The notes under the pieces: model-generated
Told to the model about the DNA's origin: nothing
The model's input: the letters and a program-made list of their open reading frames with translations, nothing else
Databases searched by the model: none
NCBI RefSeq assembly: GCF_964194025.1
Contig: NC_134478.1
Coordinates: 34,782,001 to 34,846,000, forward strand
DNA: 64,000 nucleotides
Reading direction: 5' to 3'
Source: Convolutriloba macropyga
Taxonomy: Eukaryota
In this document: one piece after another, positions 2,137 through 59,747 of the stretch
How the letters are laid out: each line of letters opens with the position of its first letter
Numbering within the stretch: position 1 is the first letter of the stretch
Program-made: the position numbers and the translations under genes

Positions 2137-3455
2137 TCCTCTGGCCCGGCAGAAGATGTTGGGAAAACTGGTACAAGTTTTACGAGCGGGCGAAGGAGTG
2201 AACCGGTTGACTTACGTAAAACGGCGGAGCGGGCGACATCGGAGTCGCAACGGAGTTCCACAATCCGAGCGATAGGGTAGTAACTCCTAGGGTTGGTTTC
2301 TTCAACTATCCAAACCAAGTCACCGGTCTTAAGGTGTTGCTCGGCAGGCGTCTGCCACATAGAGCGTCGGTTCGGCGTCGGTACGTGCTTTCTGATCCAA
2401 CGGGACCAGATCGCATTAGCGTACGACTGCGCACGGGCGTAACGTTTACGATGATCAAATTCATTATTGCCGACAAGAGACGGAACACCGGAAGAGTATA
2501 CTCCTAAAAGAAAGTGGTTGGGCGTTAAAGCGTTCAAATCGCACGGATCAGCGCTTACGGGTGTTAAAAGACGCGAATTGGGAGCATTCTCCACGAGACA
2601 AAAGGTAGTATGCAGCACCTCATCCGTGAGGCGACGAATGCCAAGAATAGTATACAACACGCGCTTGAAGCTGCGTACCAACCTCTCCCAGATACCACCC
2701 TGATGTGCTACGCTTGGTGGATTGAACCTCCGCATTATACCTTTGTGAGCGATCTCAACTGCAATATTGAGAATGTTCCACTTTTCGACCTCTTCTCGGA
2801 GTTCTTTCTCCGCGCCAATAAAGTTAGTGCCATTTTCCGACCAAATCATGGCAGGTGTAACCCTACGTGACACAAACCGCTCAACTCTCATAACACAAGA
2901 ACTGGTGTCCATGGATGTAACTATCTGGACAGCGCGAGTAGTGAGACAGGTGAAGAGGAAGCCCCAAAATTTCTCATTAGTGCGGCAGACAAAAACATAG
3001 AACGGCCCAAAGTAGTCAACATCGGTGTTCGTGAAGAGAGGACACTGGCAAGCAAGTCTCTCCTTGGGTAAGTCAGAAATGATTGGTTGCATAGTTACAG
3101 CATGGAATTCTCGGCATCATAGGCAGTTTGCTTTGATGGAACGCAAAGATGATCTTAGTTTCGGTACTGTATAGTGTTCCGGCAGAATTGATCTTAGATG
3201 TTCAACACCTTGGTGATAATGCTTTACGTGGGTGTGGTCAAGGAACAGTTTTAAAAACAGAAGACGTGCTTCTAAAACGATTGGGCAGTTTAAGTTAAAC
3301 GCAACTTCCGTTAACCGCTTGATGCGGCCCGAGGATTGGATTAGTCCATTTGGACTAAGGAACAGTGAATCCGGAGCAATTCGGCTGCTCCGTTCAACAG
3401 ATTTTTTGTCAAGAAGATCTCTTCTTTCGGTTTCAAAAGACTCTCCTTGCACCAA
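2127..3455 (-). pseudogene. BEL/Pao integrase region (zinc-binding part frameshifted; core ORF 2127-3092)
   Basis: ORFs 3117-3455 (HTHVKHYHQGVEH...CL) and 2127-3092 (DYFGP, SENGTNFIGA, WERLVRSFK, LTPNHFLLG, RPLVKL). The second catalytic D of the usual SDNG motif reads E. Confidence 0.9.
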
Positions 3456-6314
3456 TTACTGTAGATGGCGCTGGGCTTCGTCAAGCTCATTAGGGTCAGT
3501 AATGCTACCGTCGAGGTTATGTTAGCCGGCATGCTTCGGCAAAAGCCGGAGAACGTATGCGGCAATGCGCAAGTACTTTTGATAAGAACTAAACTTATCA
3601 AACAGAAATATTGAAGGAACGGGAGTTGTCCGTTTTTTGACAGATGTAGCCAGAGATACAGTGTCTTCTATTGTGACTGCTTGGTTGACGCCAATTGTGA
3701 TGTTATTAAGGACGTCTTTGTGCGGTACAAATGGGAAACGTAAATTAGTTAAGAAATGTTGGCCTTTGACCCAACTGCACAGTTGCAAAACTTCAGCGGA
3801 CATTTCACGCGTGCCAGCGTCAGCGGGATTATCCTTAGTTGTGACATGGTTTCACTGGTCAACGCTGGTATAACCCAAAATTTCACAAAGCGGTTTGCAA
3901 AAAAGATTGGTTGCTTTTCATTAGAGTTTATCCAATGAAGAACGTTCGCGCTGTTTGTCCATATGAATATCGGGTAACAGTTACAGTAAGTGCCTGAATA
4001 ATTCAGTTCATCAGCCGAGTGGCAAGTAGAGCTGCTTTCAATTCCAATTTTGGGACAGTCATTACTTTCATTGGCGCCACGCGAACTTCCCCACTACAAA
4101 CGGAAGCTGTGTTTTTACCTTGCCCGTAGGAGTTGTTACTCGGCTCGAAGAAATGCGACTGCACTAAAAATTTTCTGGGAACTGTCATCAAACATATGCA
4201 ATTCTACATTATCAAAGGGTCCAGTAAATTAATTTCGAGAAATTTTGATGTTTTCAAGCTTTGGTTAGTCCGCTCTTCAAACCAAAAATCTTTGAACTTT
4301 GTCTTGCGGGAGCTCATCCTCTCAATTTTTTCCTGTGACACGCCAGATGTCTTAAGAGCAGTCAAGCCCCAACAGTAAACGGTGCGACAAGACCAATAGG
4401 GTCAAAGACTTTCGAGACCAGACTTAGGACCAAGCGCTGAGTGAGTGACTTTGTGATAGCGCACCTGTACCCCTACTCACAACTTAAGTGTCATTAGTGT
4501 AGTCCCACTTTAGCCCAAGCACGTGCGTTGAATCCTCCTAAGATGAAGCAATAAACTTGCGTTCAGTAGATTGAAGAGTAACAGCAATTCAACCAGCCAG
4601 ATTTGGCAAATTGGTTACAAACTTTGTAAGCTTAAGCCCACCGAGACGGAGAACAAGTACCAATTCATTCGATCTATTGATGGCTTTCTCAGGAGACTCC
4701 ACTGAGTCAAGGTAATTGTCCATGTAAAGGTTTTCAAGGACGGCTTTTGCAGCTTTGGGGTAAAACTTTGCGTTCTCTCTCGCAGTGCTTTGTAATGCAT
4801 ATTTGGCGCATGTGGGCGAGTCTTTAGCCCCGAATATATGGCGCTTTTATTGATACACTACAACGTTAGTAATGGGGTCCGCCCGCCACAGAAAGCGAAT
4901 TGATGGTTGGTCTGATGGTAATACACCAACCTGTAGAAACATTCCCTCATTCCCTCGATGTCGGCAGAGACGGCATATGGATGTTGCCGGAAGCGAAGAA
5001 GTACGTGAGTAAGGTTTTGGAGCAGATCAGGTCCAGTGAACGAGGATTTAGTCATTGAGTCACCATGAAATTTTGCTGCTCCACTGAACACCCTAAGCAC
5101 CTTATTCGATTTGTTCGGGTTTAAAACCGGATGGTGGGGTAGATACCACTCTTTATCGGACCGGTTCTCAACCTTGTGAGCCTCCGGAACCTCAATGACA
5201 TACCCCTTAATTCGATCTTCCTTGATTGTACTAGTATACTTCTCCCTAAGTTCTTCATCCTTGGCCAATCGTTTCTCGAGAGACTTTAGCTGCACAAGGG
5301 AAGAGAAGTAATTATTTGCGAGCTTTGTGTTATCTGCTGCCCACAGCATTCCGACATCGTATCTCAGGCCATTGTGAATAGTGGTACTTTCACGGATTTC
5401 GTGAGTCCTTGTGTCTGCTGCAGATCGTGGGTCGACCTGCTTGCTTATCCCAAATAATTCAATGTCGTACCATGACTTAACTTGACTTGCTTACTCATTG
5501 TCATGTTCGATATCACTTTAAAGCACGTTGAGGTTAAACACGAACTTGATGGTAACAGACCGCTTAAAACCCAGCCTATGGGTAAGCGTAGGGCAACGGG
5601 TTTACGCTTCTCATTGGCAGAGAAGTATTCTAATGGGCGGATGGCATCATAGACATCTTGACCGAGTATCATCCCAATGTCTTTATAGATATATGTTACG
5701 GGATCAAGGACTGCTAAGTGTGGATAAGTCTCTTGCAGGGCCTGTACATTTATCATTATATCTGAGCTGACCTTCAGACTCTCCTTAACGAAAGGGTTGA
5801 TGGTAAGTGGTTCGAAATCCTGATGTTCTCTTGTCTTCATAGTATTTTCAACAATCATAGTGTCAACTACTTCTTCGGTATTATTACCCTTGGCAGTCAG
5901 CTTTAGTGCTTTACCGTGCAAACCGAGTCTATATACGAGACTACCGGCCACCCAAAAGTAACTGCAGGCGGTATCACACAAATCTAGAGCCCTGGTATCT
6001 AAAGCGGACGAACTGACCAACTGCAATTCAGTCACCTGAAGGAGCCCCTTAACGTCAGTAACTGATGACATCGTTGTGGTCTTGTTAAACGGCTGTTGAC
6101 TAGTAGTTGCTTTACTTTGACCTGTGTTGCCAGAAGACTGGATATTATTGGGATTTGTTGACTTTTTTGCTGGGAAAACGCTATCTGCTCCAAGCAGTAG
6201 TGTGTTATGCGAACTATTACACCCTTTTGCTCGGCTCTTTCTTGGTTGAGGGCACTGGCGGAATGTGTGCTTGTCCCGTAAGCACGAAATGCAAAGTTTG
6301 TTATCTGCCACCAA
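3456..6314 (-). pseudogene. BEL/Pao protease, reverse transcriptase and RNase H remnants
   Basis: Fragments 5445-6314 (knuckle, protease, LPIGWVLSG), 4858-5349 (RT N-part), 4003-4191 (PKLELKAALLA), 3522-3803 (WVKGQHFL...KFSSYQKYLRIAAYVLR), broken by stops and frameshifts. Confidence 0.9.
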
Positions 6315-30330: not shown

Positions 30331-32184
30331 ATGTCTGATATACTAGGAACGAATGAAGTTAGCTTTAATGATATGGATCTAAACGGAACAAAAAACTTTG
30401 GTGAGCTCGATGACGATCCAGAAACAACGGAACTGCAACCTGCTTTATCATTCGATTCCGACTCTGAGCAAGTCAAAGACGCTGTGAACATAATCGAAAA
30501 CGACTCGTTACCGCCCACTGACTCAATGGGAGAGTCCGAGCTTGTATCGCCCAATTTAAGCATGACAACAGTCGAGACATCCAGTGACTTCGGACCCGCA
30601 GCGAGTTTCGACTCTGAAGATACCAGACCCGATTCTCCGGATCTGAATAAAAGTGAAAGCGAGCCAGAGAAAACGGAGGAAAAGTCGTCAACGCCGACTA
30701 CAAAAACGACTAGCTCGTCCCAAGTTGTGACTCAACTTTGGGTGCATCGTAACGCGGACCCGGAATCCGAGAGTGTCAGTGTCGATCGAGATGTGTCGGC
30801 ATCTTCAAATCCAAATGCAGCAAACGAAGACAGCGATGAAGTAACCAGTGACTTTTCAAATCAACTATCGCCTCTACAGGAAAACTCAGAAAGTGCTTCG
30901 TTAATAGACGGAGGCAAAATTGATGAAGATGTTTTGAGGCCCTCGGAGCCGGAACCCTTGCAGGACCTCAGATCTGAACCTCTAAATTTCGACAATATAG
31001 GCTCGTCGGAAGATTTAACAAACATTAATACTGAACTTGAACCCCTTCACGTAGAAGTTGAAGTTGAGATTTCTCCAGTGGCCGCCGAAAGATCCGAAAG
31101 CGTTGCCGACCCAGCATCGGCAAGAGTAGAAGAAAGCGTAAGTGACGCCATACAGTCATCAACGTCCCGACTTGACCTAATTTGGGATACAGATATACCA
31201 TCTGAATCTGATCACGGCCACAGACATGGGCGTGCTTTAGCTGGAACCGCTAAAGAAAGTAGCCAGCATTCTCTGGAAGGACCGGGTCCTTCCGGCTCAA
31301 ATCCTCAAAATGATGGGAATCAAGTTGGGAACCAAGGCAATGCTCAACTTGTTTCTCCGTACACTTCAGAAATTGAGAGTTTGACTATTTTCAACAAAAC
31401 CGAGCTAAACCCGTTACCAAGGCGACCTGTGAACAGTTTCGGTGGAACATTTAAGGATGGTGGGGACGATTCTTTAGTTGAAACAACCTGGGACAGTGAA
31501 AGTGTTGCGTCACAAAAAGATATTCCTAACATTCCAGCTGACCCCGAACCTGAGAAGGTTAAATTCAAAGATGAGGTCACACCAATCAATGAAAATGCCC
31601 CTTTTGAAATGTGTTCTGTCAACCAGGCCAGTGGTCATAAAAACCCTGGTCCAAATTTGGAATCGAAACTTCAAATTTCAATTTCAACGGATGTTATGGA
31701 TTGCACAATTCAAGCTGACAATTTGCCCGTAAAACAAAACAAAGTCTCTCAGCCTGTTAACAGTGGAAATACTGAAAACCATAAAACAAAGCAATCCGAG
31801 CCCATAAATGTGACCCAGACTGGTGTCGACCCACAAACCGAGCCTCGGTTGACCGTTAACAAAAACCCAGTTCAAAGAACACCTGTTGGATCTCCAAACA
31901 CAGAAACTGGTCAAAAAGACGAATTTTCAACCCAGCCTAAACCAAGAAATATTTGGGCAGATGAATTACGAAGTGACATATACAAGAAGGAACCTAGATC
32001 TCAAGTTACAGGTAGACCCAAACGACTGTCCAGTAAGACGAAGGTTGATCAGCCGAATGAAGAACTCAGTTCTGCTACCAAAGAGCACATGTCTAAGTTG
32101 TGTAGTCAACATGACCATCAAGAACTTCATCTGTGCTGTATGCCACCGGCACCTTCGTACAATTTCACACCACGAATTGAACAG
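30331..32184 (+). CDS. Tail-anchored protein coding exon 1 (618 codons)
   Basis: Long ORF; donor CAG|GTTGGT after ...FTPRIEQ. Confidence 0.85.
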
Positions 32185-35100
32185 GTTGGTAAACATTTGA
32201 AGAAAAAACATCAGAAATAACTATTGCAACCTGTTCAGAGCGTTGTCACAGACCAAAAGTATGATATCCTAGACAGGAAATATGTTGTCCAAAAAAGGGT
32301 GATGTCCTAGATCAAAAGTCATTTGTCCAAAACGAAGGAGGCGCAATGTGTTCAAAGTCACATGCTTTCGATGAATGGACAACTTATTTTTGTTCCAGGT
32401 TCCCCCTTGGAATTTCAGATTTCGATCAAAAATCGAAATGATTCAGTGATCGCATTTTTCTACTTTGTTTAAGTTCAACATTGAATGACCATAGTTCTAA
32501 CTGGGTTAAAACATAATCCACGTGTTTATTCTCACCTGTAATTGTTGTCCAATAATGCGAAAAAAGAAACATACAACCAGCGTCTCAAAATTTCCGTATT
32601 CAATTAATGAATAATTGCATTGTAATTTATTATGCATGGTTTCTAGAATTCAAGCCTTTCCTTAATGAATGACCTGCTAATTGAGTAAAATATTCAAGGT
32701 CAAGCGGGAAGTAACACAACGTTCCATATCAGTTGACAGCTCAAACGCCCCTCGTAAGAAGTACCCCATGACTCCCACTAGACGACGGATCCCAAGCAAC
32801 GCCTCCAACACTTCAGACGCCGGAGATTCCAACGTCTTCGACAGTGACACCGGATCCAGATCTTCTAGGCGATTGGGCAACTATCGCGTGTATGGGAAGC
32901 AAACGCCTGTGTTTCGCAGTGGGAGAAGGAATGACAGCTTCTCTAAGGACTATGCAAGTGACACGGAAAGTGTGACTAGCATTGCGAGCAACGCAAGCAG
33001 TCGTATTCCAAGGTAGAACATGAATCAGTGTCTCCTTTCTTGGTTCTTCGGGTTAATAATTTCAGAATTTTCGACTACAGACAACTGTTTCCATTAGAAT
33101 GACTCATTAATTTAACTTCAGAGAAGCTCAATATTATGTTGAAAAATACCCAAAACAGCAGATAATGAGGAAAATTGGAGCATTTATCCTAGAACTTCAA
33201 AAATGAAACCAGCTGACACGAATAAGAATTTTAAAAAAAAAATTGTGGTTTCTGCGCAATCGCAGCGGAACAGCATTAGGCCTACAGTAGCCTGTTTTCA
33301 GCTGCCCTTTTTCTTATTTATTCTCAATTTTTGTGTTCTTCACTGTTTTTAGAAAACATTTTGCAAAATAACTCTTTCGGTCACGCAGGATCATTACGCT
33401 TTGTGTCTTTTCGGTGTCTCAAATCCACCTCGAAGAAATCCTTCATATTTAAAAATCAATTCATTTAAAGATTTTATGTCTAAACGTCTCATCTTTGGAC
33501 TAATCTTAATAAACATGAGCTTGGTTAGAAGTCAGCTAGTTGAACTCTACTGTAGGTACGTGGGCAGATCTTCCCGAACTGTATCTGAGAGCAGTCGACC
33601 AATGGGAAGGAGTGAACGAGACGTGAAGGAGTTCGTGAGACAGGCGAAGAACGCGGGTGACAGACGCTCACCTAGTAAACAAAGGTATGGTGGCCAGGAA
33701 TACACGAGTGATCATGACCCTAGGTCGAGGAAGAAAGAACCAAGGAACAACAAAGATCTGTAAGTCATTTAATATTCGGATAACTTATTATATTTACGTA
33801 AACATTATATTTTTTTCTTTCTCATTAAATGCATCCCTCTCACCCAACTGGAGGGGAGTAAGGGTTTCTTTTTTCACTAAATGAGAGGTGACCATAACCG
33901 ATTGTGTGGTTATGTGAGCGGAAAGACTTGTATAAACCAATTAGATTTATGTTACAAAACTCTGCAAAATACGATAGATACCAGTTGATGAAGAACGGGA
34001 GAAGTCCAAAGGAGTGATATGCTGCCCAATGACTTTGACTGATTAATTGCTTGATTATACCCAAGATTCAATTGTCCATCTAAGATATTCACAATATAAT
34101 TTAGACGAAGTTTTAATCGCTAGAATTTAAATTTAATTTTTTTTAAAAACATTAAATTAATGATACAAAATGCATGAATTGGTCTATATTTACACAAATT
34201 ACTATTCCATATGAATCTGGGGTCTCAGAAACAAACACATACACAGAGAGAAGACAACAATCTTGATTCTATCAAGACCACTAATCAGACTGGTCTAAAC
34301 TTTCACCATGTTCCCGAGTTGAGAATTTTGCTCGAAATAAACATCAGAAATCATCGGCTTTCGTCGAGTTTATGTCGCCAAAACCGAAGAAAACCCTTAT
34401 GTTTTTGTCGGTTTCATAGGTTTTCGTCGATTTACTTCAATTATTGGCGTTTCAAAACTTAAGAACCGTCGGTTTTTGTCGGCTTAAAAAAGTAAGAACT
34501 GTCGGTTATAGTCGGTTTTAAACATACGAAGCGTGGGCTTTTGTCAGTTCTAAATGAAGAAGTGTCGGTTTCTGGCAATTTTACATCAGCAAACAATGAA
34601 TATGGAAATTTGGTTCAATTTTAACAACTGCAGGCCCGATTGAAATCCGCATTTTTTTTACAACGAATGAAAGACCATTCGCGTAGATGCAATTAAAATT
34701 GTATGAATATCTATTTTCTATTTGAAGAAAGCTAGACTAAAAATTCTTGATGATATAGACTTTACGCAAACTGGGGATCTACTATACCAGTTTTCGTTCG
34801 ATTTCAGCAAATCTTTGACTGGGTAAAAAACACTTCTCTTGAAAACGTTTATTCATGACAAAGCTTTTATTAGCACCAAAAATATTGAAAAAAGGCTGAT
34901 TTGATTTGAAAAGCTCTGTTCTAAGATGTAGACCCTTTTTATCTGTTCAGTCCGTCCAAAACTTAAGTTTTGATTTGTTCAGTTTGGCCAACACCCACAT
35001 TTCGGTCCGTACACTATAGCCAATTCCTTTACTTGGAAATTGTCGGTTTGGAAGCCTCCTGTCCGCGACACAGCTCGGTCTGGCTAACAACTATTTCGGG

Positions 35101-44356: not shown

Positions 44357-44470
44357 ATGGAGGCAATTAAGAAGAAGTTGATGGCCCTGAAGAACGAGTG
44401 CGACAATGCACTTGATGAGGCAGAACAGGCCAAGGAGCTCCAGAAGAATGCAGAGGACAAAGTAGCCAAG
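44357..44470 (+). CDS. TPM: Tropomyosin exon 1 (aa 1-38)
   Basis: 114 nt, donor AAG|GTCAGT; upstream acceptor TTTAG| at 44319. Confidence 0.95.
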
Positions 44471-47400
44471 GTCAGTATAGTCACTTCAATTACTAACACA
44501 CAACATCAAAACATGACAATATGGGNNNNNNNNNNNNNNNNNNNNNNNNNNNNNNNNNNNNNNNNNNNNNNNNNNNNNNNNNNNNNNNNNNNNNNNNNNN
44601 NNNNNNNNNNNNNNNNNNNNNNNNNNNNNNNNNNNNNNNNNNNNNNNNNNNNNNNNNNNNNNNNNNNNNNNNNNNNNNNNNNNNNNNNNNNNNNNNNNNN
44701 NNNNNNNNNNNNNNNNNNNNNNNNNNNNNNNNNNNNNNNNNNNNNNNNNNNNNNNNNNNNNNNNNNNNNNNNNNNNNNNNNNNNNNNNNNNNNNNNNNNN
44801 NNNNNNNNNNNNNNNNNNNNNNNNNNNNNNNNNNNNNNNNNNNNNNNNNNNNNNNNNNNNNNNNNNNNNNNNNNNNNNNNNNNNNNNNNNNNNNNNNNNN
44901 NNNNNNNNNNNNNNNNCACACGCACTCACATCACTCATACATTCATACACGCACTCACAAATACACACCACACATGTACACGCATGTGCATCATACATAC
45001 TTACTTGATGCGCTCTTTTTAAAAAAAATTAAACAATTCATCAGATTTAGAAAATATTAATTTTTATTTCGAGAAACGAGAAATTTCATATTTCTGAAAA
45101 TTGAAACCATTTTTATTTACTAAGGTTAATTCGATACACTGAAGAAATTAAAGTTAAAAACTGATTTCAAAACTTTACGAGCAAAACTTTAAAATTTTTA
45201 ATAATTAATGAGATAAAAGTAATATTTAATTTGTGGCAAAGAAGCTATCCATCAATATCTTTCCAACAGCCAAATTTGTCATTATTTATTTTTCGTTGCG
45301 CCTTTTGAAATTTTGAGGAGATACTTACTAGTGATTTTTTACCTGTATTTTTGCACTTATAGAATGAGATAATCAGTTTTGGTGGGAAGTCACTGGAAAG
45401 CGATTCCTAAAAAATTCATAGGATCAACTTTTTCAAAACAAAGACGACTCAAAATTGTCTTGCTCACAGTTACAACACACAGAAGGAATAATAATCTACT
45501 TTTATCAAGTTATTGCTACTTTTCCATTCTGAAGGCAAATGACCTGTAAAACACTATCATGCTTTAATTCAAAAGTTGGCCAAAAATTGAGTTCATGAAA
45601 AAAAAGTTTTATTTGAGCCAAAACTTTTGGATAAATTGCAGTATTACAATGAATAAATTTTTATTAAAACGGAAAAAAGGATTCAAAATACCATTTACTA
45701 TTTACGCCTGTTAAATATCTAAAAGCCACATAATAACTAGCAAAATCAAAGCATTCAAGAAAAATGTAGTTAGTGAATTCAGTCTATAATAATGCTGATG
45801 ACTTCAAAAGAGTTGATTCAGTTCATTGATTTTTGTGTTTTTAAAGTAGAATATCATATTGGTTGTAAAATTATGGAAAAAAAAATCTTGTAACAATTTA
45901 TTTAGCCTGGTAAAAAAACTTTCACTTGAACAGGGATACTGTTATTCAACAATCACAAAAAAATTGAGAGCTGAAGAGAATCATCAGTCNNNNNNNNNNN
46001 NNNNNNNNNNNNNNNNNNNNNNNNNNNNNNNNNNNNNNNNNNNNNNNNNNNNNNNNNNNNNNNNNNNNNNNNNNNNNNNNNNNNNNNNNNNNNNNNNNNN
46101 NNNNNNNNNNNNNNNNNNNNNNNNNNNNGAGTTACAACTGGATACAATCTGCAGCTCTTATATAGTTAACCTGGTCTATTAGAATAACAGCAACATAATG
46201 ATAATCATTATAGTTGGAAGAGGAGCTCTCGGAGGCTCACAAGGCGGCCAAGCAGGTGGAGGATGAGCTGGACAAAGTGCAGGAGCAGCTGGACAAGGCG
46301 AACCATGAGCTGGATGATGCCAACAAGGAGAAGGCTGCAAGTGAGGCGGAGAGTGCTGCTTATGCGAGGAGACTGCAGCTGGCGGAGGAGGAGTTGGACA
46401 GGACGACAGAGAGACTCAACACCACCACTGAGAAACTGGAGGTGTCCGAGAAAAGGGCTGATGAACTAGAACGGTTAGGGAGAGAAAATTGTGTGTACAC
46501 TTCATTTGATACTTTCATATGAGCCAGTTCATGTTCTTTCACTTTCAAGTTCTTATTGCTTTTTTATCGTAGCAAAGTGCGATGCGAGCAACTTATAACG
46601 TTCTATTCGACTAAACATGTCTGATAGAAAAAAAAACAGTCGAAAATCTGATGAAATGAACTAGAATCGGGGTGTGGTTATAGAAGGATGGAATTATCGA
46701 TTTGAAATGGCGGGGGGGGGAGTTAATAGGGTAAGGCGTGACACCGACATTATCTGATGTCAGATGCTTTTTAATGTCAGCAAGGTACTTTTTATCTAAT
46801 GTCAGAGTTCAGTTCTTGGGAAACTGGCTCTTTCAGATGAAACATGGACACCCAGTGAGTGTAATGATGAATGGGCTATAATTTAGAGAGAGAAAGGTGC
46901 TGGAGAACAAGGCAATGGACGATGATGACAAGATTGAGTTGCTGGAGATGCAGCTGAAGGAGGCACAACTCATCTCAGAAGAGATGGACAAGAAGTTCGA
47001 TGCTGTCTCCCGAACACTAGTCGTAGTTGAGGGAAACCTCGAGAGGGCCGAGGAGAGGGCAGAGAGCGGAGAATCGTAAGTCACATTCCACCATTCCACT
47101 ATTCCGCCTATTTTCAACTATTCCATTCTTTTCCATCTTGACAATCTTTCTATTATTTATCCTGACTGAGAAAATAGAATTTATGGATATATCATAGCCT
47201 CTGGAAGTCTCTGTTTAAACCAATATTATCTTGTGGTTAAAATTGTCTTGGAACTCTCAAAGCTAAACATAGATTTAAAGAAGACTAAATTCCAATTTCA
47301 AGATAAATCAATCATCTCTCTGCTTCAATTCATCGCTTAAGCTTTCTGCTTCCATCTTTTCGTGCAAAATTAGATCTATAATAATGATAAAGAAATTCGG

Positions 47401-50400
47401 GCATATTTTATAAGTGTTTTGAACAAATATTTCAGAGGTGTGAAATTTTTCGAAAAACTTTGAAACGAGCATATAGATTTAGGATTGAATTTGATAACTA
47501 ATTCTAACATTTGAAGTTAGGTGGCTGTTGAAGGAGCTGTTCCCTAAGACAAAAAAACAAAGTTCTGCAAACAATAGTAAATGGTACCCAAAAATAAGCT
47601 GCATTTTCTAAAATTTAACCAAATATTTTCAGTTAAAACGTATTATCATTAAGTTTGTGGAACAAAAAGTTGCTGACAATCATTTTGTCTTCAAAAATTG
47701 TAAGGAGTAATTTTCAAAGCTGTAAAAACAGGCTAAACTTATTCATCTGGGTAAAAACGAGGTTTGCTCAATATAAAATTGAAAACAAATTTTCAGGTTT
47801 GCGGCCATTATTTCTTATTCTCTTACCAAAACCTTAAGAACATAAATTGGCCAATAAACGTAAAAAAAGTTAAAACGGTTTAGTTGAAAAAATCTTTTAT
47901 TTGCTAATCTTACCCACAATTTTCTTACTCAAAATTGCCTATATTTGCCTACCCAAAGTACTGCATTGACCATTGATCTTTTATAAATAAAAACCAACAT
48001 ACTTATGTTTTATAACTTAGCAGGATGGATCCAGAACGGGCTGTTGAACATTACTGTACAACAGTTCGCCCTTCCTATGTAACACCTCAAATGATTTCTG
48101 GAATGTATAGTAGAGAGATTTCGTTGGTGTTTTAGTTCAGTAGAAGAAAAACTAATGTGGAGAAAGTTCAAAAGATCCATGAAAAGGTCCGGATAAATTC
48201 AATGAAGAAATTTTAATGTTTTTTAGAGTCCACGTTACGTGTTCAATGTAGGAAAAGGCAAATTTCGACAAATTTTGCCTGTTTTTAATACAAAATCATT
48301 TTGAGCATGCATTTGGACTGAAATTTTTCTCGAATTTAATTAGTATCTCTTTGAGACCAAATTCAAATTCTTATTTGTTCTTGTGAACTGTGCTATGGGT
48401 AACCGCATAACCGCTTATTGCCATCTTAATCCACAATTAGTATCGAGAGGGACAATTTTGTAATTAGTTACCAATTGGGTTTTCTTTCATTTTGGTAATT
48501 AGATACTGTATCCGAGGGAAATGGGTAATTTTGAAGCAACTTTTATCTAAATTTGCTGAGTAAAAAATTAACTTGAAAAATGTAAGATATATTTCACTAA
48601 AATGAATAATCGAACAACTATATTGAGTTTAATTTAAACGCAGAGAAAAATTCATTGTTTATGTATATATTCTTGAAACATTCGTTTTGAAATAGGATGT
48701 TTTTTTCTTGTTTCTATATGTATTTTCTTGAAGGTTCCAGGGAAAATCAATTTGTTCAAGTTTTTTGATTATATGATTACCACTTGTGTTTAACATGAAG
48801 CACTCTGTTGAATCATCTCACCACAACTTGAATTATCTAGAGTTTTTTTTCTGATGACACATTTCAAAAAAAAATCAACTTTCAGTTTTTAATCTGTGTA
48901 AATTATGAATCAGATGTTTATAATTTTAATTATCGTCTATTGATTTGAACTAAATTCAACTTGTGTTTCTGTTCAACTTAATTGGCCTTAATTTTGCATA
49001 AACTTCAGCCGTAAAATCACAATCACAAAAAATTTTTTAGGAAAAAAAATATAAGTGTTGACTAGCGAAATTAAGGCGGCTGTCTTTTGAGAGCTACCTT
49101 GTTTTGAGAATTTCTACGACAAACAATTCTGGCTAGGGAACAGTTTCTACGGCAGCTTTAGTTCTAGCATTTAGCTTCTTCCTCCTCCATTTCGCTTAGT
49201 TAATAGCCACTGTTGTTGTTGTTTTCTTGGCCATAGTTCATATACAGATGAGCTTCATACATTTCATCGCTCTCTCTTCATCCAATCATAATGCTGAAAC
49301 AAATCATCATGCTTCCTCTGCAATACATACTGCTACTATGTGGGTCTTGTCATAGTAGTGGTTGTATTTTATCAGGTAAATTAGGGTCACCAACAACACG
49401 TGAACAAAATCTCCAATGAATGAATCGGCCCACGAAAACTGTAAATTGACAATTGTAATAATTTTATCATCGATCGATTACTGTATGACTTCAAGTTGAA
49501 ACTGTGAAATGTGCATCCATGAAAACATGAACATTTTTTCAATAATACCCATTAAATACCGGTTTAATATCGATTTAATGAACGAGTAATGACCGATTAA
49601 ATGCCGATTTAATGATTGAAGAACGCTAGTGGAAATCAAGAACTGTGTAAATCAAGTGGAAATCAAGATAAAAAAGAGCCGGTAGTGGGACGAAACAATT
49701 GCAATTGTAAAATGAGCATATAAGATATTAGGGACAATTGCTAGCCCACAAGCATACTAACCATGTTAAAATTAATCGACAGATTAGTTTTATTCAGCAT
49801 TATTTCACGCGCACTCATGGCATCACTTTCACACTACTTCATCTATTCTGTTGCCAACATTTCTGTTGTTTTAAGTTAGAAGAATTTTCCAAAATATGTT
49901 GAAATTATTTATTACGGGGTTGAAAATAAGGGGTCGTACTTTCTTAGCGGGTTCGTACTGGCTAATGAAGTGAGCATCATAACCTTGTTACGATGCTGGC
50001 TATCGTCTGACGACCTTTCTCCAAAACTGATGTCATTTTGATTTTGTTCAAATGTCTACTTAATTAAATCTTCGTTAAATTTGATTGTTTTGTTATTATT
50101 GACTAGCATAGACTAAATATGGACAATTCGGATTTTCATTTTTGATTTTTATTAATAAAATACTTTTGGGGTACATTTTTGTTATTTTTTCGGTATTATA
50201 AGTAACCTCTTTTGAGTGCATTAATAGGATGAATATTCCTTATCATGTAATACTATGTCGCACCCACTATATTAAGACGCACTAAATAACGTGACATTTA
50301 AAAGCATTTCACAAATGTCACATTCAACAAAATTATTTGTCACACACACCGTGAGAGAAATTATTCGTCTTGTCGGATTGTATTTCATGTGGTATGGTTA

Positions 50401-53400
50401 CGGTTATGCTGTACATGATACAATTAATAAACACTCCCAACGTAATCAGGTGTTCACTCAGCCGGAAGGTCAAATTAGCCAAATTTTTTATTTCTGCTTT
50501 CCTTCATTATTGAACTTTCAAACATGATTTTTCAATGCTAATTTGTTTGACTTCTATCTATAAAGAACTAGCACATTTTGCAAAAAGGCAACACTTGGAT
50601 GTAAATTAGCTCCCATTTTTATGGTATTTAAAATATTGTCTCCTGCGAAAATAGGGTCGATTTGATTATTTTGTTTTTGGCTAACTTTGTCATTTTGGCT
50701 GATTGCTACACCATCACTTTAACTTGCAGTGCGTATAAGATATTTGGATTTTTTTCTACAATCGCCTCCCCTTTGCTACATAATAAAGAATTTTCTCCCC
50801 TTCTAAGCTATAAAATCGCCCGCTGTTCTGATTGGTCGAAAAAATGCTCTCTTAAATTCTGTTCAAGAATTACCTCAAAGCGAGGCTCCCCTTTTACACT
50901 AAGGAAGGCGATTGTTCAAAAAGTCCGAAACCTTGAATGAATTTGGATCGATAATATGAGTTTATAAATACCCACTGCAAGCTAAGCAAGTTATGATAAC
51001 TAACAAACCCACCATGAAGAGTAGGGTTCTAACCAGGGTCCCTTGCCCGTTTGCAGCAAAGTCGCTGAGTACGAAGAGGAGTTGAACCTTTTGGCCAACA
51101 ACCTCAAGTCGGTAGAGGTTGCACTTGACAAGGCAAACGAGAAGGAATACGAATATGAGAACACAGTTAAGGACCTCGAGGAGAGATTGGAAGAGGCCCT
51201 TAAGAGAGCAGAGTTTGCAGAGAGAACCATCAACAAGCTCGAACAACAGGTCGGTCACTCTTTGATTGTTTTATATATACAGAAAAAATCCACCTTAATA
51301 TATAGCACTCACGACATCGGATAAGCTTTGGTACCCAAAATCTATGTCTGTCATGATCGGCGCCGCACAACAAAATACAGAAATCTCACAACTTAAATTC
51401 AGGTTTCAGTGAACATCATGAATACAAATTTTACATGAAAAACAGGTTTCGAGGATTACAAATCGCGCAGGAAAACCCCAAGTTTTTTAAAAAAAGCTAA
51501 AATTAGTAAGCAATCTGCTCGAAGCGTTGCTAAAACGAATCAGAGTGACCAATATTTTTACTCTTTTTCTTGCTATGATAGTTTACAATGTACAATTTGC
51601 AGCATCAGGAAAAAAATGCGTTTTGTCAAAAAATGCAACGAATGCAAAAAAAACCTTTGGGGACGAAAAGCAAGAGCTTTACAGACTTTTGATTGAAGTA
51701 GTTTCTTTAATATAGTCAGAAAGTTCTTCTGATTCTGAAAAAAAAATCTGTCGCTATTACAAATGAGGCTAGAGTTCAAATCTTCAGCTAAAGAATGGTT
51801 CTAATTTTCTAAAGAGGAAGATTTTGATAAAATTTTACACAATAATAAAAGATCACTTACGTTTTGGGGTTCAATACAATCAGTTGGGAATAAGCTGCTT
51901 GTTAGACGTTGAAAAATGAAGTACGCTAAGTAATTTTAAAACATGGTTGAATTATAGAGAGAAATTAAATGTGGGCATTTGAGACAAACAAGTGGGAAGT
52001 ACTGGCATAAGGTCCAGATATAAATTAAACTGAAAATATATTAGCAATTTTTAAGCCTCGTTTTCAAAATACATTTTTCGAAAAAATTCTGATCAAAAAA
52101 GGGACGTAAATTTGGAAAAAGTTGCCATTAGAAGTGAGCGAAGATGGAAACTCTACAGTGAGATAGTGAGAGAAAGTGTTGGAAGAGGATAAGTTACAAC
52201 TATGCAATCCATATACTAGACATTTACAAATCTGAAGCGTAAGGACGTTTCACTAATTAAATAACCTGAACAAAAGTATTTTATTTGTTTAAGTTTTTGA
52301 CATTTGACATTTTTGAAAACGTTTCTTCTGGTTTATGTTGCCTTTGGTACCATAGTTATCTTCCATTTGTATCATAATGTTTTAGATAAGAAGATTTTCC
52401 AGATACCATATAGTTTTTAACAGCTCACTGAAAATTCCGTATCAATATTATTGTGGTCCCGTTGCCCATTTCAGTTAAAGAAAAAATATCTTTTCTATCG
52501 ATCGGTTAAAATAACTAAATGTTGTGGCTGCAATTTTTTGAAAACCAGTTTAATTCTTTGTCTGTCATTAATTCTGCTGCATCTTTAAGTGCAGAAACAA
52601 GTTTCCTTACTCTTTTTCGCGCAATTTCTTAATTCTCATTTGATAATCAACTATTAATTCTCTTAAAAGCAACTTTGTTGCTTCTCTCGTTTAATTTTAC
52701 TGAAGTTGTCTTCGAAAAATTTGAAATTGACCAGTATGAAATCAGTAGAAATTTGTTTTCTTTGTTTTGTTTTCTTAAAAAAATTGTTATAGCAATAGTT
52801 AAAGATCTCAGTTTTTTTGCTAGCGGGTGCTTATCTCTGTTTTTTCCAAATATTTTGATGTGCATTGTTTTCAAAATCAAATTGAAAATGACTGACATTT
52901 TTCACGCTTGATAACGAAAATTTTATGAAATTATTTTCACGTCTACAAATAAGTAAAATTAAGGTTTCTTTTTGTCTGCAAGTTAGGCTTCGATCCGTTA
53001 TCTGACAATTTAAGGTAACCTTATTTTCTCAGGTTGTGCAATTGTTGACAATTTTTATATTCATAGTCGGCAATTTTATATACCAAAAATTTTTAAAGTT
53101 TTTCATAAAATCTAATTTTGTTCCACTGGGCTTATCTACCTAAATTTTTTTTATATGTATCAAAACTCATTGTTGATCTTTTGACTCAAAATAGCCTCTT
53201 GAATTTTTCAGGGTTTGTATCAATAATGTGTTCATCCCAAAAAAATCTTTCGATTCAGTTTTTGATTGCTTATGGTGGGCAAAATAGTCTCTCTTACTGA
53301 TTGAATGAATAAGGTATGGAGAAAAAAGGAATTAGATCTCTAATAGAAACACTTTTTACTGCTTGGAAAGCAAACCATTTGCATCGAAACCTGTTTTTTT

Positions 53401-56400
53401 CTGAAAATTGTCGTGATTCATATATAAATATTACGTTTTATAATACAATAACTGATACGATTGACAATTTTTAGGACTCACAGTCTCAGAATATTACGCT
53501 TCTCAATGTCTTTGCCAACGGCACTCAAAAACCATTCCGTTTTGCGGTCACAAATTCTGTATCACGGTAATACATTTTAGGTATTAATGAGTTGAAATTA
53601 TACAGTCCGGAAGCACATCGTAACAAACTATGTTTTCAAATTGTGTTCTGAAAAAAAACGGCACTTGAATGTTTTGAACGCAACTTGAATGTTTTGAACA
53701 CACTGGGCAAAGTATTTCATTTAATTTTTTTCTATAAGTTTTAAAGAAAATCACATGGACATTTGAGAGATGATTGGATGCTATTCTGTTGATAAAACAA
53801 TTCTAAAATTTGCACGTGGTCAAAATGAGTTACTTTATAAAAACTGAAATTTTTTGCGCATATTTAAATTTATATTTCGAATTCTTACTTTTTTGGGGCC
53901 CCTAGTTAAATTGAGTTATTGAACTTATTGAACTTATCTGAGCCAAATCCAAACTCGTTCGCTCTATTTAATTTTTACATTAACTGAGACGTAAATTTGT
54001 TGTAAATTTGTCTCTAAGTTTTTCGGACAGATTTGATGTGATTTTCGTGTGACTGTCATTGAGAGTGACAACTTTTTTATGTGACAACAAGTATTTGAAC
54101 AAATTTCTATCATCAGTAACAATTTAATAGCAACCTATACTTTTTGCACCTTTATAAACTATTTTTTTGCTCCCAGTTAACACAAATATTCAATTTTCTT
54201 TTTTCGTTCATTGACTACAAAAAGCATTTCCACATAATCAAAACCGATTTAACTATTATATTTAGCTTTTTTGCTCCAATTATTTTCAAAATTTTGTGAA
54301 CAAGTTGTGATTTTAAACGCGAGCAACGCAAAAACCGTGTTGCTCGTAAATTCCGAGGTGAAGTTATGAGTCCATTTCGAATTTTTTGTTGCTACAGAGA
54401 AAGCGCTTTGGGGAAGAACAGGCCAAGTTTTTATGCTAAACTAACGTTTTCTGTAAAGATAGCATAAATGAAAAATTGAATATAGATCTTTTAAATGTTA
54501 CTTGGCATTGCCCATCATAAAGTAAGATACAATGTGATTCACATTTTAAGCATTGTGTATCAGAAGTTAAATTTTGCTACGCAATCAAAACTAGCCTAAA
54601 GCGAGCTAAAAATATTTACTGGCAAAATGGAGCTAATATGTTTGATAATATTGTATTGGGGTGAATTTGGCAGAGACTTAGCTCACAATGCTTCTTGCTC
54701 TTTTGAGAGTAAAATTGGGCTCTCGTTTTGACTGAAATTTGAGTCGACCCCACAACCTTGGTAGTTAATTTCATATCATGAACCTATCTATGCAGGTGTC
54801 TATTTATTTGTTTGTTAACAGTTGGACAACGTGGAAGAAGATTTGTTCAACGAGAGGACGAAGCTCAGAAATATCATGGCAGAACTCGACCAGATCCTGG
54901 CAGAGATCACTGGACAGTCTTAAATGCCTTATCCTCCCTCTTTCTCATTGTTCCTATGTCAAAGAGACAAACAAACAGAAACAAACAAACAAACAAGCGT
55001 GGTCGTGGTTGATTGATTGGCTGGCTAATAACCCTATTATTATAATAACTTGTACATGTTAACCAACTTGCATGCAGCGCATCGCAGACACCTTTACTAA
55101 CATCGGCAGATAGCAGCAGAGCAAAAGAAGACACAGAAAAATGTTTAATTTTATTACTACATCATTATTATTACTACTATTATTATTACAATTGTCAATT
55201 AGTTATCTTAATTTCTCATCTTTGCTTCCCGGCTCTTCAAAATACCAACCAGGTTTCTGATAGCAATTTTAGAGCGGCAAGATTTAGATATAAAGTATAA
55301 TTTCTGACAGTTAAGAATGAACACGTGAAGCTGGCTTTTTAAAAATTCCGATTCGAACTTTTCGGAATGGAGTACAAAATAGTTTTTCAGAAGAAAACTT
55401 GAGTAATTAGAAGTGTTTTTTATGTTGGACAAACGCCTGGATTCTCTTAAAGTGGAAATATGAAGTTTAAACGTCGATTTGTATTTAATTTTGCATACAT
55501 TTTGAAAAAAAAACTATCATAAGTTTCTCAACTGATGGCGGAAGTTCATTACATTGCAAAAAGCACATTTGCTCAGTATATATACTCGGCTCTTGATTGT
55601 TTTAAGCATGTATTTCGAGCAAATGTATTAAGATTAAGAAATTAAGCGACAGGAAAAGTTCAGGCATTCTGAAATTTTGGTACGTAGATCACAGGTTTTC
55701 GCATTTTATAGTGTGCGAATAGTAGCGACAAGTGTTATTGATTCCAATCTTTCGATCTTGTCGCCAATTCTATTCTAGTTCTCTGATTTTGGTGGATTAA
55801 TTGCCAATTTTTGCCGTGTATCGTTAGAATTCGCAGCCAAGATCAGCAACCAGGAATGGCAATTTAATCGGTGATTTTTGCATTGTTGCTGACTTTGGGC
55901 AATTTTGCTAAGATACGAAAAACCAATGAAATGTTTTTGTCAATAAAATCTTCTTCTTTATGAAATAATGGTGCACGTTTAACAATTTTTTTCCAGAAAC
56001 ATTAACATACAGATCTCAAGTTTATTGAACCAAGTTTAATATGATTGATTTAATTGTCAAAATAAGTTTGCAAAGCCATAAAAAACAATGATTTTTTGCA
56101 AAATTAGTATGATAAAGACCTCGACTAGAAGCGTTTGCTTTTTCAGAGCTGTAAAAAAAATCTCCCGATTTTATGAAAAACAATTATTTTATGCACTTTT
56201 GATGCTTGAAACGTATTTAGGAAACAAAGAAATTAAATGAAATCCACAATCCGGAAGTTTTGCTATACAGAACTGATAATTAATTTTTGAAGCAAACAAC
56301 TATATGCAGGATAACTGTACCGATCATTTGACGGAATTAACTCACCAAATTTATTTTTCTACATAGGTATATAAAAGAATACAAAGCTCAAATTATATGA

Positions 56401-58571
56401 TTGATAGATTTGTTCTAAGAGCACATCTTGACGGCAAAAATTATAACGAACACGGAGATTTAAAATGTTCTTTGTCACTAATATTACTTCAAAGTGATGA
56501 AAAACATTTCGACTTTTCAAAATTGAAAAAAAATGCTTTGCATTTAGATCAACCAATAATTCGTGTTGTTGAAGTCATCAAAATTTAAACACAATAGGTT
56601 CAAACCACATGGAATGAAAGTGGAATTAACCAAAAGTTTTTTAAACAGATAATAAGATTTAAAGTCTTTTATAACAAAACATCCTCGGCCAAGTTTGCTT
56701 CACAACTTACTACGGCATGGCGAAAAAAACAATCTTTTCATGGTGAAAGCGTTTCAGTGTTCTCGCCTAAAATGAGTTTTAAAAATGGGGCGTAGGATAT
56801 TGGGCAAAAACTATATAAGGTGGAAGATATATTTGGCCATTCGGCAAAAATTCCGGACTAGAACTTTGTTGAGACATTTAATGGCTCTACTGCATTAATG
56901 ACTGACTGAAAAAGTATAGTCAAACGACAATTATAATTGACTTTGTAGAAAAATAGCTTAAAAAATAATAAGAAAAATTTGACTTATTTCTAACTTTGAG
57001 TGTCTTTACAATGTAGTGTGACATCATTTATCCCATTTTTCCGAACTGATTTTCAACCGGTATTTCTAAATTATTTTCATTAAAGTTATTGACAACAAAT
57101 TTTATACATTCACTATTCTCTGTTTGCTAGTTTTATTGAAAATCAAAATCATTGGCCGTGATGACAGTCAGTAGAGTAAACGAGTAGCAAAATTTAAAAA
57201 AAATTGTAAATTTCAGGTTAAGATGACTGTTTGGGACACATGAAAACTTCATGGAACTGAGTGGATTTTGATATATCTCTTTTAATTGGTTCTTGCCTAC
57301 TTTTCACAAAAATTTATTACAGGATTTTTGCCTAATGGCTATAAAAGTGCCTACGTCTAATCAAGTTTTCGCCTAATAAACCATCCTCCGTAAAAATTTG
57401 TAAAAATTGTTTTTGTAAGGTTTATAGCAGCTGATTGTGTAAAAAAAATTTAGATTGTGAAAAATAGATTCTCTAAGATCGGTTGAAGCCAAAGAAAAAG
57501 AGTTGGCTCGTTTTGTACTTGAAATCAGTACTTTTCGAAAACAATTATTTTATATTTTTAAATATCGAAGTCTGACCATGTCACTAAAAAGTCATGATCT
57601 GAAGCGAATTAGAATTTCATGTAACTTGTCACGTTTTTCTCATTCTATGCTTAAATTTGGTCAAATATGCGTCATTAAATAACTTCCAGACCCCATGAAC
57701 TTTAAATCATATAGAAAGGTTTGAGCAAGTACTGAGAAGTGAGAATTGCAATTGAACATTGATCCTTCAGTACTGAAATTGAATGGATTCATTCTGCATC
57801 AGCACTGATCCATTCATGATCAGTGCTAAAACAGAGTAAGTATGCTCAAGTGGGTGTGAATACAGGAAGATCACAGAGTATGAAGAGGAGCTGAACATGC
57901 TGGCGAGCAACCTGAAGTCAGTGGAAGTGAACCTGGAGCAGGCCAATGAGAGGGAAAGTGAGTATGAGACTACAATCAAGGACCTGGACGAGAGATTGGA
58001 GGAGGCTCTAAAGAGAGCTGAATTTGCCGAGAGGACCATCAGCAAACTCGAACAACAGGTCAGTCGACCCAAATATTCTGTTTCTAACTAAGGCAACCTG
58101 CATGCTGACTTTTTGCTACAAATTTTTAAAATGATAACAAAACCTGCAGCTGAGCTTAAACTTTTCGCCAATGTCTAATAAAGCCTGACAATAGAATGAT
58201 CTATTTTCTATAAAGCAGCATATTTTAATTTTAAGTCATAACAGAAGCGCCGAACTTTGAAAGTTTGCAAAATTTCAAAATTTCAGCTAGTTATTTATAG
58301 CAATTTGTGGTTATACAAAACTTGTATACAAAAGTTGTGGGTATGCAGAAGTTGTATAAATTTTAATCACCTATCTTTGGAATTCGAATATTAATTATCG
58401 TAGAAAAATTTTGTTGAAGCTGCTCAATAAATCCTTCTTTGATAGCTAAATGATCTGTTTTTTTTTCAGCTGGACAACGTGGAGGAGGACTTGTTCAACG
58501 AGAGATCCAAGTTCAGAAACATCATGGCAGAACTGGACCAGATCCTGGCAGAGATCACTGGACAGTCCTAA
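44357..58571 (+). CDS. TPM: Tropomyosin (long, 285 aa) with two alternative 3' cassettes; isoform A join(44357..44470,46214..46473,46887..47075,51057..51249,54822..54923); isoform B join(44357..44470,46214..46473,46887..47075,57866..58058,58470..58571)
   Basis: MEAIKKKL start, RRLQLAEEELDR, EKRADELER, LERAEERAESGES, NNLKSVEV, RAEFAERTI. Introns after residue 38 and inside codons 125 and 188 match vertebrate TPM positions; the non-canonical core residues D137 and E218 are conserved. Confidence 0.97.
44526..44916. other. Assembly gap (391 N), followed by a CA-rich low-complexity tract
   Basis: Run of N. Confidence 1.
45990..46128. other. Assembly gap (139 N)
   Basis: Run of N. Confidence 1.
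46214..46473 (+). CDS. TPM: Tropomyosin exon 2 (aa 39-125)
   Basis: TTATAG| acceptor, CG|GTTAGG donor, 260 nt. Confidence 0.95.
46887..47075 (+). CDS. TPM: Tropomyosin exon 3 (aa 125-188)
   Basis: ATTTAG| acceptor, TC|GTAAGT donor, 189 nt. Confidence 0.95.
51057..51249 (+). CDS. TPM: Tropomyosin exon 4a (aa 188-252, isoform A)
   Basis: TTTGCAG| acceptor, CAG|GTCGGT donor, 193 nt; KVAEYEEELNLLANNLKS...TINKLEQQ. Confidence 0.93.
54822..54923 (+). CDS. TPM: Tropomyosin exon 5a (aa 253-285 plus stop, isoform A)
   Basis: TTTGTTAACAG| acceptor; LDNVEEDLFNERTKLRNIMAELDQILAEITGQS*. Confidence 0.93.
   Translation: MDNVEEDLFNERTKLRNIMAELDQILAEITGQS
57866..58058 (+). CDS. TPM: Tropomyosin exon 4b (aa 188-252, isoform B)
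   Basis: ATACAG| acceptor, CAG|GTCAGT donor, 193 nt; KITEYEEELNMLASNLKS...TISKLEQQ. Confidence 0.93.
58470..58571 (+). CDS. TPM: Tropomyosin exon 5b (aa 253-285 plus stop, isoform B)
   Basis: TTTTTTTTTCAG| acceptor; LDNVEEDLFNERSKFRNIMAELDQILAEITGQS*. Confidence 0.93.
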   Translation: MDNVEEDLFNERSKFRNIMAELDQILAEITGQS

Positions 58572-59747
58572 ACCCAGACACCAAAACCACAACTATCACC
58601 ACAAAAAAAAGCCAAAATTAGGCGCCTTGTTGCACCTACCTCTTCATCTCGTGACAAAATTGTTTGTGCAAAGATGTAGAATTACTATTGGCCAATTCCG
58701 TTGATTGTTTCAAAACATGTTCATTTTTTACAAAGACTGTTTATTGATGTCCACAATTAGGATCTGTTTCAAAACTATAAATATTACAAATGCACTTCTC
58801 AAAAACAATTTCTGAAACAGACAAATCTGAATGTTATTTTCTAGTCTATTAAACTACCCATCTTAAATCAAAGCATAGAATTGAAGGAATCTGTTAAAAT
58901 CACAAATCTCGGCCCTGTAATAAGTCAAAATTAACAATAACTTTTAATTAACTAAAAACAAAGTTTAACAGATCCTCTATTTTGATAACTGTTAGAACTA
59001 CCTGAATGACCTTAGTATCATATTCGCGCGGCTAAAATTTGGGACAATAAAAATACAATATTGCTGTTTGCATTTAATATTTCAGCTTTTATTATTAAAC
59101 TATTATTTATAACTATACCTGTAATTGCACTAATTTGGATTATGCAAATTCTGTGAATTGAAAATGACACCTACTTTTTTTGGAAAGTGATCTGCTTCCT
59201 TTCCGCCGCTATAGTATGCCCTAATTAACTGATGGATAATTTTTCTGTACTTTTGTTATGGTGCATATAAACAGTCCCGCATATTTTTACAAACGATTGT
59301 CAGTAAAATAGCGGTAACATTATTTTTGTCACATATAGCAAAAGGGAGTAATGGTTATTCGTGCTGACCAGTCCGCCAAAAAGTTGGAAATTTTTTATCC
59401 ATGTTGCGTATAACAATAAGCCGCAAAACGTACATTTGGCTTTTTTCTTCGGCTGATTTGGCCAAATCGCGAACAACACTTTTTCACATTTGTCAACGAT
59501 TTATGTCACTACTTTCCGACGTTTTTGCATTCAATTAGCCTGCAGCTAAAGTTATTGATTTTAATAATAATTATCCAAGACATCAACCAGGCCTTAAATT
59601 TTGTTAATTACGATAATACGAGTAAGTTTAATCCAGCAATTTGCCTTCTTTATCCTCGAATATGAAAACGAACACCTTTTGTCTAAATGAAAATCAGTTA
59701 GGTTTTCTTTGATTTTGGCTAATTGGTATTTTGTTAACATTTTTTAT

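Follow-up and report, generated by a model that had tools for sequence, protein, structure and literature searches.

A tropomyosin gene in the acoel Convolutriloba macropyga with two alternative 3′-terminal modules

A tropomyosin gene was examined in a 64,000-nucleotide stretch of the Convolutriloba macropyga genome (RefSeq assembly GCF_964194025.1, contig NC_134478.1, forward strand, positions 34,782,001 to 34,846,000; this whole stretch is called the window, and positions are counted from its first nucleotide). This is very probably one gene with three shared 5′ coding exons and two alternative 3′-terminal modules, both of which are used. Each module comprises exon 4a or 4b as the penultimate exon and exon 5a or 5b as the last coding exon, and has its own TAA, 3′ untranslated region (UTR), and 3′ end; the coding parts 4a-5a and 4b-5b are called cassettes A and B. 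Exons 1–3 followed by either cassette form an open frame of 285 amino acids (aa), and the two products, isoforms A and B, differ at 15 residues, 13 of them among the 64 residues of exon 4 and 2 among the 33 residues of exon 5. The exon positions, exon lengths (193 and 102 nt), reading frames, splice sites, and counts of differing residues given by the original prediction, which was made from the sequence alone, were all recovered in the sequence.

Gene structure and transcripts of the two modules

Exons 4a and 4b, each taken alone, matched the Pfam tropomyosin family PF00261 at 52.4 and 54.0 bits, respectively (curated cut-off, 38.6 bits), and P0102, a transcript of a relative, matched it at 152.6 bits. 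The heptad coiled coil is unbroken in both 285-aa isoforms, with hydrophobic residues at 68 of the 82 a/d positions in register 0, versus 15–41 in the other registers, and the N-terminus, MEAIKKK, conforms to the M-x-A-I-K-K-K motif conserved in tropomyosins, which have approximately 284 residues. Exon 1 is 95% identical to its orthologue in a second species (tblastn; contig L006, described below). Exon 3, at 189 nt, is a multiple of three in length, and the frame remains open, at 222 aa, when exon 2 is joined straight to exon 4a.

The two modules share a single set of 5′ exons. Searches with tblastn found no second set of exons 1–3 within the window and no second copy of exon 2 or exon 3 in the whole 1.18 Gb genome, in which exon 4 occurs in these two copies and no others. 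The inter-cassette region contained no tropomyosin-like exon in tblastn and no wholly contained open reading frame (ORF) of ≥70 aa. The only runs of N in the window, at 44526–44916 and 45990–46128, both lie in intron 1, and none lies between 54923 and 57866. The original claim that there is neither a second 5′ exon set nor a sequence gap between the cassettes was borne out in both the window and the genome. The first run of N is flanked by a CA-rich simple repeat at 44917–45000.

Among the runs listed for this organism, none was recorded as RNA. RNA evidence came mainly from run X8, which is labelled as the same organism and belongs to a 2016 multi-species study separate from the reads of the assembly. 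The share of words found in X8 for exons 2 to 3 was 0.60, about the exonic share, and X8 contigs were placed on window positions 54600–59600. Their depths were in the thousands on exons 5a, 4b, and 5b and on both UTRs. In the introns, the depth was approximately 2 between 4b and 5b and zero over the final 167 nt before 5a. An X8 contig omits 58059–58469 (411 nt, GT..AG), so that 4b is spliced to 5b, and in an X8 contig the end of 4a stands directly before 5a, a joining that was also found in X9 contigs. The predicted joining of 47075 to 57866 was looked for and was found in one X8 contig, which opens with 29 nt identical to window positions 47047–47075 (the end of exon 3, unique in the window) placed directly before 57866; an overhang of 29 nt is the length expected at an assembly-graph branch on a shared exon. 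A genome-wide search found no processed copy of the tropomyosin exons, and the X8 contigs are therefore read as derived from spliced, polyadenylated RNA. Both modules are present in the RNA of this organism.

The 3′ ends of the two transcripts are distinct. An X8 contig runs beyond 55232 with a tract of 22 A residues that is absent from the genome. In the UTR of isoform B, a 565-nt X8 contig spans 58554–59120, high depth continues to the 59109–59275 bin, and AATAAA and ATTAAA occur at 59046 and 59094, respectively, whereas the UTR of isoform A (54924–55232) contains neither AATAAA nor ATTAAA. The non-templated A tract at 55232 for isoform A and the separate 3′ UTR of isoform B support the predicted coupling of acceptor choice with poly(A) choice. 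Because 5a carries a stop codon and a poly(A) site, the two modules would be exclusive of each other within one mRNA. A (CAAA)n-like run was also noted in the UTR of isoform A, at approximately 54961–55005.

Between the modules, X8 contigs of low depth (12–70) cover 55203–55911 and 56526–57892, with no coverage at approximately 55936–56436. This inter-cassette RNA amounts to less than 1% of the exon depth and fits read-through past the poly(A) site of module A and unspliced precursor of isoform B. The block at 55203–55911 may represent an extended 3′ UTR of isoform A, with an AATAAA near 55944, and the block at 56526–57892 may be unspliced precursor or the product of a minor internal start.

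In relatives, six "merc" fragments (P0102, P0104–P0107, and P0110), from what we take to be a marine eukaryote metatranscriptome catalogue, have exon 3 joined to a type-a exon 4 and then to exon 5. Short contigs of X15, a run with another organism label and guessed to be RNA, lie at 54817–54884 and 58011–58058 and show, with a few mismatches, 5a preceded by a 4a-like end, so that the A junction also occurs in a related strain or species. A 167-aa protein, P0063, in which tropomyosin exons 2–3 of a close relative (96% identical) are fused to actin, is almost certainly a chimeric metatranscriptome assembly and was not accepted as a real fusion.

Table 1. Features of the tropomyosin gene, in positions of the window
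Feature	Positions	Strand	Description
Exon 1 (from ATG)	44357..44470	+	aa 1-38; open frame, N-terminus MEAIKKK, GT donor
Exon 2	46214..46473	+	aa 39-125; 260 nt, single copy in genome
Exon 3	46887..47075	+	aa 125-188; donor 47075/47076 common to 4a and 4b; single copy in genome
Exon 4a	51057..51249	+	193 nt; aa 189-252 of isoform A; AG acceptor, GT donor
Exon 5a, coding part	54822..54923	+	102 nt; aa 253-285 and TAA; AG acceptor
Isoform A 3′ UTR	54924..55232	+	309 nt; poly(A) site at approximately 55232
Inter-cassette region	55233..57865	+	3′ part of the 10.8-kb intron removed in exon 3-4b joining
Exon 4b	57866..58058	+	193 nt; aa 189-252 of isoform B; AG acceptor, GT donor
Exon 5b, coding part	58470..58571	+	102 nt; aa 253-285 and TAA; AG acceptor
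Isoform B 3′ UTR, minimum extent	58572..59120	+	high depth on to approximately 59275

Elsewhere in the window, a 629-aa ORF at 30331–32220 on the plus strand had no Pfam match, and several minus-strand ORFs of 160–320 aa at 2127–6314, in a GC-richer stretch, may belong to a transposable element.

Age of the duplication and selection on the copies

When the two cassettes were compared within the genome, the alignment covered the exons and a few flanking bases only, and the introns and UTRs could not be aligned. Cassettes 4a-5a and 4b-5b differ by 37 synonymous and 18 non-synonymous changes, giving a dN/dS of 0.057, which is far from chance. The synonymous divergence (pS) between the copies is 0.74 in exon 4, near saturation, and 0.45 in exon 5. 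These results agree with the original description of many synonymous changes and of introns and 3′ UTRs that do not align.

The same arrangement was found in two other species, on a 581-kb contig of the second species (L006), reached via the genomic ORF fragment P0002, and on a 21.7-kb contig of the third species (L007/L008), reached via the fragment P0103. In both L006 and L008, the exons are ordered e1, e2 (split), e3, 4a, 5a, 4b, and 5b, with lengths and splice sites as in C. macropyga, and homologous tandem exons of equal length (193/193 and 102/102 nt) and phase, with intact splice sites, are accordingly present in three species. The intron lengths vary widely among these species, and the gap from the 5a stop codon to 4b is 2,942 nt in C. 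macropyga, 1,087 nt in L006, and 864 nt in L008. A blastn comparison of the window with L006 revealed no conserved sequence beyond the known exons, whether a non-coding element, an extra exon, or a UTR.

Exon 2, a single exon in C. macropyga, is split near aa 80 in L006 (10001–10672) and L008 (198–1009) by an intron of approximately 390–550 nt, at what is presumably the position of the vertebrate exon 2/3 boundary; the intron was probably lost in the C. macropyga lineage. When exon 2 was used as a query among protein representatives, only relatives of approximately 50% identity and fragments were retrieved, with no full-length close relative.

A maximum-likelihood analysis of exon 4, with six sequences from the three species, separated type a from type b with 99/98 support, and the duplication is therefore older than the divergence of these species. 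Judged from the exon sequences, a single tandem duplication of the 3′ end of the gene gave rise to the modules before the three sampled species diverged. The exon 4b protein sequence is 95% identical to its L006 orthologue. Between C. macropyga and L006, cassette B differs by 36.5 synonymous and 3.5 non-synonymous changes (dN/dS 0.011; Fisher p ~3e-26 for the synonymous excess), and the dN/dS of cassette A is 0.010; cassette B is therefore constrained as coding sequence as strongly as cassette A. These substitution patterns indicate that strong purifying selection has acted on both cassettes ever since they were duplicated. The tree and the between-species dN/dS values thus uphold the earlier proposal of an old duplication under purifying selection. 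A reading of the second copies as pseudo-exons was rejected on the divergence of the copies, the between-species dN/dS, and the shared exon order in L006 and L008.

In the exon 5 tree, the copies were not sorted by type. The 5a and 5b exons of L006 are 96% identical in DNA and encode an identical protein, whereas exon 5 orthologues are 84–91% identical between species, and the copies of exon 5 show less synonymous divergence from each other than do those of exon 4 in both L006 (p = 0.006) and C. macropyga (p = 0.045). The likeness of 5a and 5b looks like the result of gene conversion on top of constraint, for which the evidence is moderate because the exon is short. The near-identity of 5a and 5b had originally been attributed to purifying selection; this part of the explanation stands, and gene conversion appears to account for some of the likeness. 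Two of the metatranscriptome fragments, P0105 and P0106, have a type-a exon 4 followed by an exon 5 similar to the type b of other species. They were not counted as 4a-5b hybrids because the exon 5 types are unstable between lineages and because protein-level assemblies can be chimeric.

Proposed mechanism, isoform differences, and alternative explanations

A tandem duplication with breakpoints in intron 3 and downstream of the gene would have produced a working arrangement at once. Isoform A would result from splicing of exon 3 to the nearer acceptor, at 51057, with cleavage and polyadenylation of the transcript at approximately 55232. Isoform B would require that the 4a acceptor be skipped and that transcription continue past the weak proximal poly(A) site, and the donor at 47075 would be joined to 57866, with the removal of 10.8 kb that includes the whole A module. 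The choice between the isoforms would then be a competition of proximal splicing and cleavage against read-through and, by analogy with Caenorhabditis elegans unc-60, is probably set by cell-type-specific RNA-binding proteins. The sequence upstream of the 4b acceptor is purine-rich in C. macropyga and L006 (pyrimidine fraction 0.41) but not in L008 (0.64), so that the poor pyrimidine tract of 4b is not conserved.

The residues that distinguish the isoforms are concentrated in a short stretch. Across the three species, seven positions (199, 202, 212, 213, 219, 223, and 225) are fixed by type and three more (190, 191, and 210) are type-disjoint. All ten lie within aa 190–225, and from aa 226 on the two types are practically alike. 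The original proposal of a nearly constant overlap end with a varied part upstream therefore holds, although the varied stretch is aa 190–225 and not aa 190–250. The changes are conservative at 190 and 225, which occupy the core a position (V or C versus I), and at 210, which occupies g; the other seven are surface b, c, or f positions. The variable part begins where vertebrate exon 6a/6b does, at the intron position of aa 189, and runs into the equivalent of exon 7. From the placement of these residues, switching the module would retune an outward-facing surface for actin, troponin, or other partners, equivalent to vertebrate exons 6–7, whereas the C-terminal overlap region, which must fit a single N-terminus, would be the same in both isoforms.

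We consider it possible, though only tentatively, that the acoel lineage independently evolved an equivalent of the vertebrate exon 6a/6b switch by the choice of a terminal module. Under this proposal, the isoforms would differ by cell type, distinguishing either classes of muscle or muscle from non-muscle cells, and active gene conversion would preserve the likeness of 5a and 5b, since each isoform has to form the head-to-tail overlap with the one N-terminus. In that event, the 3′ UTRs could serve directly to tell apart cell types that the usual pan-muscle tropomyosin probe lumps together.

Several points weigh against a single gene with two modules in use. X8 is recorded as "DNA?", and its cDNA nature was read from the contig pattern; its contig depths cannot rank the isoforms, both of which are only called well represented. 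The exon 3–4b junction is one contig with 29 nt of exon 3, and the exon 3–4a junction was seen in transcripts of relatives only, not in those of this organism. Unspliced, low-level RNA upstream of 4b (57137–57892) leaves room for a minor internal start. Finally, searches of the marine metatranscriptome proteins seeded with the cassette part of P0102 and exon 4b of P0109 yielded A-type transcript fragments and genomic ORFs but no transcript of type b; since X8 contains isoform B in RNA, the missing B-type metatranscripts were treated as thin sampling rather than absence.

Three other explanations were weighed. The first supposes that the protein difference is secondary and that the modules are retained mainly to place two 3′ UTRs on the same protein, so that mRNA stability, localisation, or translation differs between cells. 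The 3′ UTRs of the two modules cannot be aligned with each other, aa 226–285 are almost identical in both isoforms, and exon 5 is homogenised between the copies, as would be expected in that case. However, the UTRs themselves are not conserved between species, and seven type-fixed and three type-disjoint residues, across three species in which synonymous sites are nearly saturated, are hard to explain without selection on the protein difference. We therefore regard this explanation as unlikely.

The second explanation is that 4b-5b is driven mainly or partly by its own promoter in the inter-cassette region, giving a short transcript whose product could be, for example, a C-terminal fragment with Met199 of 4b as its first residue. 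This methionine distinguishes type b from type a in each of the three species, and the low-depth X8 contigs at 56526–57166 and 57137–57892 run unspliced into 4b. The latter, however, has a depth of 47.7 versus 6,721.6 for the spliced 4b-5b contig, a low level that fits unspliced precursor, and the contig over the 5′ edge of 4b carries exon 3 sequence. There is no in-frame ATG upstream of 4b in any of the three species, which argues against independent initiation of translation, and no conserved sequence between 5a and 4b, a gap of only 864 nt in the third species. The search for separate 5′ exons or a promoter of 4b-5b, either of which would have contradicted the original prediction, thus yielded no second 5′ exons, no conserved extra sequence, and no in-frame ATG, but only the minor unspliced RNA, and a promoter of this kind is very improbable.

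The third explanation, that two alleles or paralogous loci were wrongly joined in tandem, is scarcely credible: although the published S. roscoffensis assembly keeps some uncollapsed haplotypes (PMC9911081), the exon 4 copies here differ at 74% of synonymous sites, far beyond allelic divergence, low-depth X8 contigs cover much of 55203–57892, with holes, and a test of the mis-assembly that the original prediction had allowed for found the identical tandem order 3, 4a, 5a, 4b, 5b in two other species that were assembled independently.

Acoel tropomyosin and comparison with known systems

In acoels, IpTrp is reported to be expressed in all muscles, and tropomyosin serves as a pan-muscle marker (PMC3566195). 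The gene described here is most likely the same gene as acoel SrTrp/IpTrp, because a single locus of the genome matches exons 2 and 3 and because the genome carries the S. roscoffensis spliced leader. The published 31-nt leader (PMC9911081) had 2,128 matches in the genome with ≤1 mismatch, compared with 0 for the reversed control, a count far above the expectation for leader RNA genes alone; by its leader, the genome belongs to that species or a close relative of it. SrTrp/IpTrp is treated as a single product in the acoel literature that we found, whereas the gene here has two C-terminal modules. In that literature search, outside which the original SrTrp paper (Chiodin et al. 2011) lay, we found no description of acoel tropomyosin isoforms or of alternative C-terminal modules. 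Muscle-marker probes for acoels, or single-cell reads from 3′ ends, may see only one isoform or merge both, and the unrelated 3′ UTRs allow the isoforms to be detected specifically.

Tropomyosin is the classic example of isoforms diversified by exon duplication. The kind of isoform switch is already known, and the case leaves the understanding of tropomyosin or of alternative splicing unchanged. It adds a cleanly documented case of duplicated exons in the Xenacoelomorpha, a lineage relevant to the reconstruction of early bilaterian muscle. Three of its features are useful: the duplication of a whole two-exon terminal module, a selected difference confined to approximately 36 residues that overlap the vertebrate 6a/6b region, and the concerted last exon.

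Many tropomyosin exons have been duplicated independently in most bilaterian lineages (PMC3342872), and in TPM1, lev-11, and Tm1 the 3′ exons have been duplicated in tandem, apparently independently in each gene, and encode homologous C-termini (PMC9741552). As in human TPM1-4, Drosophila Tm1/Tm2, and C. elegans lev-11, tandem homologous exons in C. macropyga vary one segment of an otherwise identical coiled coil. However, the unit here is a two-exon block (aa 189–285) with a stop codon and a poly(A) site, and what is switched is a terminal module, rather than one internal exon in mutually exclusive use or the last exon alone. The terminal exon pair is nearly identical here, and the real difference lies in the penultimate exon. 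An explanation cited for such duplications assigns the exon copies to long and short isoforms from two promoters (PMC3342872); this scheme is not evident here, where both products are 285 aa and begin with the same exon 1.

In arrangement, the gene resembles C. elegans unc-60, which also encodes actin-filament regulators and in which shared 5′ sequence is followed by two tandem homologous multi-exon terminal series, each with a stop codon and a poly(A) site, the distal series being reached by skipping the whole proximal series (PMC3469465). It differs from unc-60 in its protein family, and unc-60 shares only exon 1 and yields two proteins that are much more divergent. Moreover, the regulators of unc-60 have been identified as ASD-2 and SUP-12, together with the intronic sites on which they act, whereas the comparison of the window with L006 revealed no conserved element in the introns here. 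As far as we found, in a lineage for which we met no earlier description of such a gene, the present case joins an exon duplication of the tropomyosin type to a terminal module of the unc-60 type.

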